Assembly (NCBI GenBank): GCA_002269645.1
Contig: NIVC01000329.1
Span: 1 to 26,253 of the forward strand
Length of the DNA: 26,253 nucleotides
From: Macrostomum lignano
Taxonomy: Eukaryota
Direction of reading: 5' to 3'
Shown here piece after piece: positions 5,701 to 8,700 of the stretch. Below the pieces are notes generated by a model. It was given only the letters and a program-made list of their open reading frames with translations. It was not told the origin of the DNA and made no database searches. Made by a program: the position numbers and the translations under genes. Each line of letters opens with the position of its first letter. The stretch's first letter is position 1.

Positions 5701-8700
5701 ATTCTGCATAGTCCTTGATACACGCCCATACTAAGTTTTCTACGATGTGAAGTTTTCAACGAGTTTCCAGCTTTTGCACCCAGATTTGGAAAAGTTATTA
5801 GCTTTACAGGCTAGTGAGTATTATTTTTAGTAGTATATTAAGTATAATGTAGTTTAGCATCGTTTAGTGTGACTAATAATTTGCGCAAAGTTGATTATTC
5901 AATAAAAACATTCCAAGCTAAGCAAGCAAGCTGAAAGTGCAAGAACTGTAGAGATCGTTTTTAAAAATGGTATCTCACCGCTCCGCTAGCACCGCTGCCG
6001 CCACTACCGACGAGCAAGTCAGTTGCTGAGCCTTTGCGCGGGCTGGCTCGCAGATTAAAGCCAGGGTTGCTGCCCGCCTTGCTCATCCGACGCTGCTGGT
6101 CCAGCCCTGAGGAGCGGGACAACATGGGGTTGGGAATCGGAATTCGTTATTTGCATGAAACCGTGAATATCGCAATGCTAATTTGATGGTGTCAAGTGAT
6201 TTTGGCTCGATATTATACTCTGCAAAGTACTGAAAAGCAATGATTCTTTTTGTCCGCGCATCCGAATCTTAACGTGCTTCTGCCTTTGAGTTCCTCGCGT
6301 AAAAATTGTTTGTGCCAGCGCTCATACTTCGGGTGTGCCAAAATTACTTTAGACCATTCTACGCCTGGACGCCTGGACGCGACAGAAGCTCGAAGTCACT
6401 GCTTAAAAGAGCTGTCCTTTGTGTATGGATGAGAAGATCCGCGCCACACTACCGTTTTTAATTACTTCAAGGTAGCCAAGTGCCACCAAAGCAGCCAGCG
6501 ACTGCTCCAATGGTGCTGGCGGACCATTAACCAATTCGAACTTCCGAACTGATCGAAGATGAGAAGATCGGCAGGTACAACATGGATAACTTCCGACTAG
6601 CTGGAGATCGACGAGTCGACGGTGCATTAAGGAGAAGATCCGGGGCTGCGTTGCATCACTTCAGTGATCCCCTTCACGGAGGCAGAGTGGCATATGCTGG
6701 AAACATTCCGTAGCGCATTTCAGAGCGAAGGAATGGACAACATCATTAACAAGTTGATCACACAGTATGAGAGCTGGATCTTTAGTGAAGGCTAGCCTTG
6801 CAAAATGAGCAAAATCTAAGGGAGAGCACAGGCCTCCGGTGGCGAGATGCCTGACAACAAGAACACTGCTGTTGTAGCCTTCCCACCCAGTAAGAGGTCT
6901 TCCTTTGCAACAACCGAATCAGGACAGCCAGTAGATAGGACAGGCTGAACTTATCGCCAACTTAGTTTAGCGAACTAGAAATCCCTGGCGATCTCTCAGA
7001 AGTCAGCCGAATCTATCTTGACCAAGTCACCTGGCAGTGGGACAGGGCCAGGCCTCACGCAGCCGCAGCAACTCAGCATTACAAGGAGAAGCGATCCAAA
7101 GCGATCCGACTGCCGTGACCGGTTTCTGTTTCTGTTTTCCTTGCTGCAGCGAGACTTCGAGCAGCGATATTTTCTGGATGCGCGGCCTTGCAATGAGAAG
7201 GGATTAGAGATTGGAGATTTAAGATTGGAGATTGGACCTGAAAACAACTGGCCTCGTTCTTGAGTAGCCATCAATCACAGTGGCGACGATCAGGCTTTAT
7301 CGGCCGACTTCCTGAACTCTCTGCCAACTCGGACATCAAGGCTCGAACAATGCTTCATTTACAAGGATGTTCGAGACGAGGCATAGGTGACTACCCTGAT
7401 TACAGCAATCGAATATATTATCATATTGCATTTTGAGAATTTGGTACTGCTATGCAGCCCGAGTATCCTTGGTGTTTAGCTTGAGACTTCTGCATCTGCA
7501 ACTTCGTTATCTTCGCTTTTGATTATTCTCAAACAGGCTTTTCCTTCAGTTCTCAACACTTTCGCATGATTGCGACAGCAACTCTTTTATTCAATGGCCT
7601 TTCAAACTAATTCCATTAACAAGCTCTAAAATTTCATGCGACTAAATTACGTTAAACTGATCGGCGCTACTTTCGTTACTTAGCTGTTTGATACGCTCGT
7701 AGTTGTGTGCTTTTCGTCAGTTGCCTTAGGCCAAGCGACTGTACCTCTTGTGTCGTAGAATATGCTGCTTGCTCAGACTGCTTACGAGCTGCTGCAGCGG
7801 GACAGGTGCTTGAGACGTTCCTTGTCTTATTAGAGGCATCCAATTGGCTGTTTCATTGCCACACAAGAAACAATTGGGTTTCCCTGAGAAAATACCAAGG
7901 GAAATCCCAAGTTAAACATGTCCGAGTCGATCCAATCTCTGTCCAATGAGCATCTAGTTGTGTTGGAGGCGTCTGGTTTTATTGGCTAAGTCACTGCACG
8001 ATTTTTCAGCTAATCGAACAAATAGCCTCTTCCCGGCAAACGCTAACCTCTTTGCTTTCCCGTGTTCTATTTTCCACCACTGTTGCCAGCTGAAAGCTTG
8101 ACAGCGGGCAAGTAAAACTCGAAGAAAGCTATCGATTAAAATTATTTTTTTCGTCGGGCAATCATGCGTTTGCTAGGTACTCTGGGAACTGTTTTAGTCC
8201 TGATCGGTCTAGCAGCTGCTGGCCGTGAGCAGGAGGACACTCAAGGTGCGCTAGAGGAGAAGAGGTTCTCTGCTCCGGGAACCTACGACTGGAAAAAGAG
8301 GTTCTCGGCTCCTGGGACGTACGACTGGAGGAAGAGGTTCTCGGCTCCTGGGACGTACGACTGGAGGAAGAGGTTCTCGGCTCCTGGGACCTACGACTGG
8401 AGGAAGAGGTTCTCGGCTCCTGGGACGTACGACTGGAGGAAGAGGTTCTCGGCTCCTGGGACGTACGACTGGAGGAAGAGGTTCTCGGCTCCTGGGACCT
8501 ACGACTGGAGGAAGAGGTTCTCGGCTCCTGGGACGTACGACTGGAAGAAGAAATCAATGGAATGAAACTGACACAAATGCCGATTGGTTTGATGATTGGT
8601 ACCCTAGATTGGTACCTAGTTTTCGCCCGCTAAACTGTTTGCAACATCATCCTTTACTGTAGTAATGCTTACTGAGCAGGCAGAGTGTATAAGATTTTGA

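Follow-up and report, generated by a model that had tools for sequence, protein, structure and literature searches.

Does the array of short tandem repeats at positions 8164-8565 of a Macrostomum lignano contig encode a peptide precursor and, if so, which kind of peptide would be released from it? The stretch analysed here, hereafter the window, corresponds to positions 1 to 26,253 of contig NIVC01000329.1 (assembly GCA_002269645.1; 26,253 nt, forward strand). A sequence-only reading of this DNA had described a prohormone carrying eight identical, non-amidated FSAPGTYDW peptides. The locus has an intact open reading frame (ORF), the architecture of a prohormone, codon-level constraint, paralogs and conserved synteny with one of them, and no relatives were found outside the species. 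We regard it as a functional, apparently transcribed gene for a small secretory pre-pro-peptide, which is probably the precursor of a neuropeptide or peptide hormone. It would thus be a gene of a familiar type that encodes a new peptide and is apparently restricted to its lineage.

Architecture of the precursor gene

The features of the gene are given below, with positions counted from the first letter of the window.

8137 to 8139, + strand: in-frame upstream stop codon TAA, 27 nt before the ATG
8164 to 8565, + strand: complete single-exon coding sequence of the peptide precursor, 133 amino acids plus stop (ORF from ATG to TGA)
8164 to 8223, + strand: predicted signal peptide MRLLGTLGTVLVLIGLAAAG (hydropathy; cleavage after A19 or G20 by the -3/-1 rule)
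8224 to 8259, + strand: acidic pro-region REQEDTQGALEE, net charge -4
8260 to 8265, + strand: first dibasic cleavage site KR (predicted)
8266 to 8292, + strand: FSAPGTYDW copy 1, then KKR; the most divergent unit at the nucleotide level, with 4 synonymous differences
8302 to 8328, + strand: FSAPGTYDW copy 2, then RKR
8338 to 8364, + strand: FSAPGTYDW copy 3, then RKR
8374 to 8400, + strand: FSAPGTYDW copy 4, then RKR
8410 to 8436, + strand: FSAPGTYDW copy 5, then RKR
8446 to 8472, + strand: FSAPGTYDW copy 6, then RKR
8482 to 8508, + strand: FSAPGTYDW copy 7, then RKR
8518 to 8544, + strand: FSAPGTYDW copy 8, then KKK, the tail SME and the stop
8843 to 8848, + strand: candidate poly(A) signal AATAAA (pattern match alone)

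The order of the precursor is therefore MRLLGTLGTVLVLIGLAAAG-REQEDTQGALEE-KR-(FSAPGTYDW-[KR]KR)x7-FSAPGTYDW-KKK-SME-stop. The eight nonapeptides are all identical, and the basic blocks that follow them are KKR once, RKR six times and KKK after the last copy. In every unit, Trp9 stands directly before a basic residue, with no Gly as amide donor. At the nucleotide level, Tandem Repeats Finder describes the array (8259-8551) as a 36-nt period in 8.1 copies with 95% match and 0% indels. Because an in-frame TAA is found at 8137, the ATG at 8164 must be the start, barring a spliced-in upstream exon; its context presents an A at position -3. The leader consists of MR, a 17-residue hydrophobic core and A-A-G, followed by a charged stretch, i.e. 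the usual n/h/c layout, and the means of a 9-residue Kyte-Doolittle window reach 3.06. After removal of the signal, the predicted mature protein would count 113 amino acids. The signal peptide (here by heuristic), the acidic spacer and the eight exact nonapeptides between basic sites had all been placed correctly by the sequence-only reading, which had also rightly noted that the Gly required for amidation is missing.

If the AATAAA at 8843 is used, the 3' untranslated region measures about 280-300 nt. The motif lies 278 nt past the stop, and no second canonical AATAAA was found in the 600 nt downstream of the stop. On the 5' side, several CCAAT/ATTGG motifs were noticed by eye at 7840-7990, 170-320 nt upstream of the ATG, as possible promoter elements; no canonical TATAAA was seen by eye in the same interval.

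Codon-level constraint between two near-identical copies

The first half of the window (1-13132) is 97.9% identical to contig L001 (NIVC01004175.1) of the Mlig_3_7 assembly, which carries a near-identical copy of the ORF (about 98%) at 10001-10402, annotated as BOX15_Mlig001773g8. In the DV1 assembly, duplicated blocks with an identity of 95% or more are known to add up to about 180 Mb (PMC5730564). Given this identity and these duplicated blocks, the window locus is to be read as an allele or a recent duplicate of BOX15_Mlig001773g8.

We compared the two copies codon by codon. Over their 402 positions, the ORFs show 8 differences and no indel, and all eight fall on third codon positions. Seven are synonymous, including every change within the repeat array, and the remaining one is E24D in the spacer. 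The 3 kb on each side show 2-4% divergence with 18-31 gap openings. By computation, a random single-base change in the 27-nt unit has only a 22% chance of being synonymous, and the probability of the observed pattern is about 1e-2 to 5e-4 if gene conversion leaves only 3-5 independent events. The variable sites within the array are likewise all synonymous third positions (TCT/TCG, CCG/CCT, GGA/GGG, ACC/ACG). The FSAPGTYDW frame is the only one that keeps the units identical in both near-identical copies, and the only one that joins such units to an ATG and a leader; the other frames show amino-acid changes from unit to unit, or stops, in L001 or in the diverged paralog L002 described below. 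These comparisons indicate purifying selection on the ORF and show it to be a true gene and no product of chance.

Paralogs and evolution of the family

A diverged paralog was found at L002:10001-10423 (annotated BOX15_Mlig017890g3). It has a leader, a spacer, a KR, one FAQAGTYDW and seven FVQPGTYDW units, all with KKR, so that both loci count 8 units. The two arrays share only about 70% nucleotide identity. Synonymous changes (TTC/TTT, GGG/GGA, ACG/ACC, AGG/CGC) have nevertheless left F1, P4-W9 and the basic sites in place. Between the two genes, leader and spacer have diverged essentially beyond alignment. Conservation is thus concentrated in the peptide and the cleavage sites while the pre-pro region has changed freely, a pattern that reads as the hallmark of peptide precursors. 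Moreover, the two loci are syntenic, with a minus-strand multi-exon gene downstream in both. Because the exons of this neighbour are only 68-79% identical in amino acids, the duplication that separated the two loci must be old, and both copies of the peptide gene have been kept.

A third paralog type presents FSAPQAFDW/FSAPHAFDW units behind a hydrophobic leader of its own. It is known from two protein models: P0002 (UniProt A0A1I8HD77), a fragment named "Coat protein", and the C-terminus of P0004, a mis-fused model of 1378 amino acids. P0004, in which the peptide array is joined to an unrelated protein, also appears to retain an intron-like insert of about 50 amino acids behind its first copy of the peptide.

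At least three paralog types therefore share a leader, a spacer, a KR and nonapeptides at a 12-residue period with KKR/RKR, which gives the family consensus [KR]R-F-x-x-[P/A]-x-x-[Y/F]-D-W-[KR][KR][KR]. F1, D8 and W9 are invariant across these types, and the differences between paralogs lie at positions 2-3 (SA or VQ/AQ) and 5-7 (GTY or QAF/HAF). Between the types, the pre-pro regions show no sequence relationship, but the leaders are equally hydrophobic. Since units are uniform within each gene and different between genes, with the unit at the edge of the array being the most divergent, concerted evolution of each array is indicated. On these alignments, the gene belongs to a small family so far seen only in M. 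lignano. In the databases, its other members are labelled hypothetical, wrongly modelled or wrongly named.

Indirect evidence of transcription, and annotation errors

For the GenBank annotation of Mlig_3_7, the only sources were RNA-seq assemblies and a de novo transcriptome, on which ORFs were predicted with TransDecoder (PMC5730564). As this annotation is derived from transcripts only, the gene models BOX15_Mlig001773g8 and BOX15_Mlig017890g3 imply that transcripts exist, and the gene is apparently transcribed. The annotated products do not match the genome. The two genes span 402 and 423 nt, with uninterrupted genomic ORFs of 133 (L001) and 140 (L002) amino acids, for annotated products of 85 and 92 amino acids respectively. 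Each product is thus short by exactly 144 nt, i.e. 4 units. Every unit contains GAG|GTTC, and a canonical GT...AG "intron" can be aligned within the array. This 144-nt intron is probably an annotation artefact produced by collapsed short-read transcripts. The products of 85 and 92 amino acids were not retained as true proteins, the genomic sequence being open for 133 and 140 amino acids with a gap of 4 units. We also gave up reading a genomic copy number from the ".g8" suffix, as members of one Mlig cluster differ in length. Transcript-guided annotation would thus have collapsed both arrays from 8 units to 4, and the copy numbers of repetitive precursors in the Mlig assembly should be re-read from the genome.

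That the locus holds no gene at all, a 36-nt minisatellite being open by chance in several frames, is scarcely credible. The unit is without stops in 4-5 of the 6 frames, an antisense ORF of 131 amino acids is present at 8162-8557, and tandem repeats are abundant in the window; because stops are lacking in most frames and this antisense ORF exists, an open frame proves nothing by itself. Chance openness does not account for an ORF that has its ATG, leader and upstream stop, for variation confined to third codon positions, or for antisense and other frames whose units vary or run into stops in L001 and L002. Nor does it account for the L002 paralog, in which frame, copy number and key residues are preserved at such low nucleotide identity, or for the existence of transcript-based gene models. 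On the frame analysis and the third-position variation, a chance or antisense ORF in a minisatellite was rejected.

Search for relatives

We then searched for relatives of the precursor in other organisms. A word-indexed search of 5.8 billion clustered proteins gave 3 matches, all from M. lignano. An exhaustive hidden Markov model (HMM) search of 1.84 billion representative proteins retrieved only M. lignano proteins and 25 unrelated low-complexity repeat proteins, none of which has a leader or dibasic-flanked F...DW units; the profile was made of 3 sequences and 4 units, and distant relatives with one or two copies would fall below its detection limit. Nothing in Pfam exceeded the gathering threshold, the sub-threshold noise being YtkA, PsiA and SHIPPO-rpt. 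Exact-sequence look-ups of the window protein, P0002 and P0004 found none on record.

In the literature, searches with the peptide strings (FSAPGTYDW, GTYDW, QAFDW and similar) and with the gene identifiers found no relevant paper. None of the motifs YDW, FDW and DW plus a basic residue occurs in the prohormone and peptidome supplements for planarians, or in the main texts of the surveys of molluscs, annelids and nemerteans/brachiopods/phoronids. In the mollusc survey supplements, the search for DW-plus-basic strings met one incidental "DWKR" in an unrelated chiton protein. The view that no known family can be assigned thus withstood the protein, profile, Pfam and literature searches, in which no relative outside M. 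lignano appeared. That the family is undescribed, as further suggested, is likely, not proven, and an earlier description under an "npp" name in older flatworm surveys is possible. Two such surveys, McVeigh 2009 and Koziol 2016, reportedly mined flatworm data for neuropeptides, the former including expressed sequence tags of M. lignano.

Comparison with known peptide families

Could the gene belong to one of the known families (AKH/RPCH-GnRH, APGWamide, MIP/Wamide-WI, or FCAP/pedal-peptide-like) as a diverged form that has lost amidation? We consider this highly improbable. Some echoes can be found: FS..PG..W recalls the FSPGW of AKH/RPCH, APG..W recalls APGWamide, and the spacing aromatic-x7-W recalls W-x6-W. 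The sequence-only reading had called the resemblance to the first two loose, and so it is, as both fail on their defining features. AKH/RPCH peptides stand alone in their precursor, immediately behind the signal peptide, begin with pyroglutamate, are amidated, and have an aromatic residue at position 4 and W at 8 (pQLNFSPGWamide). They share with FSAPGTYDW the short length and the elements F-S, P-G and W; FSAPGTYDW differs in being present in eight copies after a 12-residue spacer and KR, with an N-terminal Phe1 and a Trp9 followed by K/R. APGWamide is the tetrapeptide APGW with a Gly amide donor, encoded in many copies. In FSAPGTYDW, APG is followed by TYDW without a Gly donor.

The MIP/allatostatin-B Wamides and the annelid WI peptides, a non-amidated offshoot of MIP (PMC3890597), resemble our gene in having multi-copy precursors and a C-terminal or nearly C-terminal Trp. 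They differ in having two Trp (W-x6-7-W), with a Gly donor in MIP and a terminal I/L in WI (PMC3890597), whereas FSAPGTYDW has one Trp, in the arrangement F-x7-W, and no Gly, Ile or Leu after it. In architecture, the nearest family is that of the FCAPs, which are spiralian, multi-copy, non-amidated short peptides between KR/KKR with a free aromatic C-terminus (PMC6425005). We compared the Aplysia, Gadila, Deroceras and Rotaria precursors given in Suppl. Note S4 of that paper. The copy number of FCAPs is 6-28, and the Aplysia peptide ALDSLGGFQVHGW ends in a free Trp; the FCAP-related rotifer peptide SLDSLSGNDFF is present in 8-9 copies (PMC6425005). However, FCAPs measure 11-13 amino acids, often with acidic spacers between copies, and have a core x-[LF]-D-[ST]-L-G-G that is absent from FSAPGTYDW. 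Taken over these families, the defining features are missing from our gene: there is no pyroglutamate, no single copy behind the signal peptide, no Gly donor, only one Trp and no FCAP core. In addition, none of these families came up in the profile search of 1.84 billion proteins, and the missing YDW, FDW and DW-plus-basic motifs of the planarian supplements and spiralian main texts point in the same direction.

The general layout has better-known parallels. Proenkephalin and the yeast alpha-factor precursor combine a leader, a pro-region and identical repeats with dibasic cleavage of the kexin/prohormone convertase (PC) type and carboxypeptidase trimming, without amidation. The FSAPGTYDW precursor shares this multi-copy free-acid layout without any sequence relationship, and differs from alpha-factor in that the latter needs Ste13 to trim spacer dipeptides, of which the flatworm precursor has none. 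To judge from its layout, the gene works like a classical multi-copy prohormone outside every family tested. A fungal gene for an alpha-factor-like pheromone had also been considered and was dropped, as the protein matches and the 13-kb contig at 97.9% identity place the window in M. lignano.

Proposed processing and function

The general marks of a prohormone are found in this precursor, i.e. a heuristically predicted signal peptide and repeated short peptides with di- or tribasic bounds. From the sequence, we infer secretion, cleavage, trimming, a signalling role and neuronal expression. The N-terminal leader would direct the chain into the endoplasmic reticulum and then be removed. In the regulated secretory pathway, a convertase of the PC2 or PC1/3 type would cut after each KR, and an enzyme of the carboxypeptidase E/D type would strip the trailing C-terminal K/R residues. 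The products would be eight copies of FSAPGTYDW-OH per precursor, a free acid and not an amide because no Gly precedes the basic sites, with a computed monoisotopic [M+H]+ of 1043.447. For the paralog peptides FVQPGTYDW, FAQAGTYDW and FSAPQAFDW, the computed values are 1112.5047, 1058.4578 and 1068.4785 respectively. The residue at P4 of the cleavage sites is Trp, not Arg (W-R-K-R, W-K-K-R), unlike the classical furin sites R-x-x-R. Released in this way, FSAPGTYDW would most likely act as a neuropeptide or peptide hormone through a receptor. The Tyr beside Asp may be sulfated; sulfation would be no feature of the family, as the third paralog has Phe at this position. With a net charge of -1 and a length of only 9 amino acids, the acidic peptide gives no hint of an antimicrobial role. 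As to the enzymes, the nervous system of the species expresses a PC2 homolog (RNA815_2403.2), which is essential after hatching, its RNA interference being lethal (PMC4490696). This convertase is the processing enzyme that the literature check covered.

Several points weigh against a neuropeptide or hormone gene. Bioactive invertebrate neuropeptides more often end in an amide than in a free acid. The signal peptide is a prediction from hydropathy and the -3/-1 rule. No ortholog that would show deeper conservation was found outside M. lignano in the protein searches. Finally, part of the identity between units comes from concerted evolution of the tandem array and not from selection alone.

The same precursor chemistry could serve outside the nervous system, in exocrine or reproductive glands releasing peptides (prostate or seminal fluid, pheromone, mucus, defence) that act outside the body or on the partner. 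We hold this to be unlikely, though it is the main rival reading. The architecture fits neurons and gland cells alike, and analogues exist in the multi-copy precursors of sea urchin sperm-activating peptides and in fungal alpha-factor. Lineage restriction together with paralogs that have diverged at positions 2-3 and 5-7 is a pattern shared with reproductive proteins, and reproduction-related genes are described as evolving fast in Macrostomum (PMC7336406). On the other side, both gene identifiers are absent from Table S11 of PMC7336406, which holds 192 transcripts characterised by in situ hybridisation, mostly in tail, prostate or antrum; this counts for little, as that screen was not exhaustive. 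Moreover, KR sites without Arg at P4 suit convertases of the PC1/3 or PC2 type better than constitutive furin. A more specific version supposes that the F-x-x-P-x-x-[Y/F]-D-W free acids are a Macrostomum-specific pheromone or ejaculate signal that manipulates the partner, with sexual conflict driving the diversification of the paralogs. M. lignano, a reciprocally copulating hermaphrodite, would provide the setting; we consider this version quite unlikely.

Small secreted tandem-repeat proteins are generally known to be common in flatworm glands, and the precursor might also be such a protein, left uncleaved and having a structural, adhesive or eggshell-type role, with the basic triplets as part of the repeat. 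A search for peptidomics data on M. lignano, which would speak to this directly, found none. We judge it very unlikely, since the mature protein would be very small (113 amino acids) and its basic residues occur solely as KR, KKR, RKR or KKK blocks that exactly bound the units. These blocks are kept in all three paralog types while the interiors of the units differ, and the succession of leader, spacer, KR, array and short tail is the canonical layout of a prohormone. A cleaved precursor of a neuropeptide or peptide hormone therefore remains the reading that we prefer.

Lineage-restricted orphan precursors with many copies are routine in well-studied spiralian neuropeptidomes, and the gene neither opens nor settles a long-standing question; many precursors are known from Platynereis only, for example (PMC3890597). 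If confirmed, a lineage-restricted family of free-acid Trp peptides would join the sparse neuropeptide catalogue of M. lignano, an early-branching flatworm used as a model for transgenesis and regeneration. A secretory cell type would gain a compact, highly expressed-looking marker gene with its promoter, and the peptide could serve as a ligand to deorphanise G protein-coupled receptors. These gains, and the corrected annotation, would mainly benefit work on M. lignano.

Genomic surroundings

The eukaryotic DNA of the window holds few genes and contains kilobase-scale microsatellites, several minisatellites and the remnant of a retrotransposon. The tRNA and Rfam scans found no features in it. 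Convergent with the peptide gene, the minus-strand multi-exon neighbour extends over 13634-25592. The exons that it shares with L002 at 68-79% amino-acid identity include 14026-14217, 14769-14910, 15595-15680, 15810-15922 and 21433-21569. A kinase-like piece at 23036-23404 matches Pfam Pkinase with E=0.004, below the cutoff, and two other kinase-like pieces lie at 21625-21918 (...LLEKMLDRDPKHRPSA...) and 25316-25537 (...LHSTQKVIHGNL...). This neighbour is presumably similar to an SCY1-like pseudokinase with HEAT repeats. It is not annotated in the GenBank loci examined, and a sequence search of the PDB gave it no name.

Two microsatellites of the same motif family were found, (CTAA)n with about 224 copies at 2845-3739 and (TAAC)n with about 520 copies at 17952-20030. 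The latter sits in an intron of the neighbour gene, where the GC content falls to 25%. A cluster of minisatellites with periods of 19, 18, 44/131, 17 and 20 nt is scattered among the neighbour exons at 13855-16497, and the alignment with L001 stops at 13132, just ahead of this cluster. At the left end, the GC-rich first kilobase (23-926; 58%) contains overlapping ORFs. In one of these (170-622, + strand), a CCHC zinc knuckle matches Pfam with E=0.004, and the motif LLIDSGAG is aspartic-protease-like; from these motifs, 23-926 is identified as the remnant of a retrotransposon gag/protease region. At the right end, a 41-nt tandem repeat (26105-26253; 3.6 copies) runs past the end of the window.

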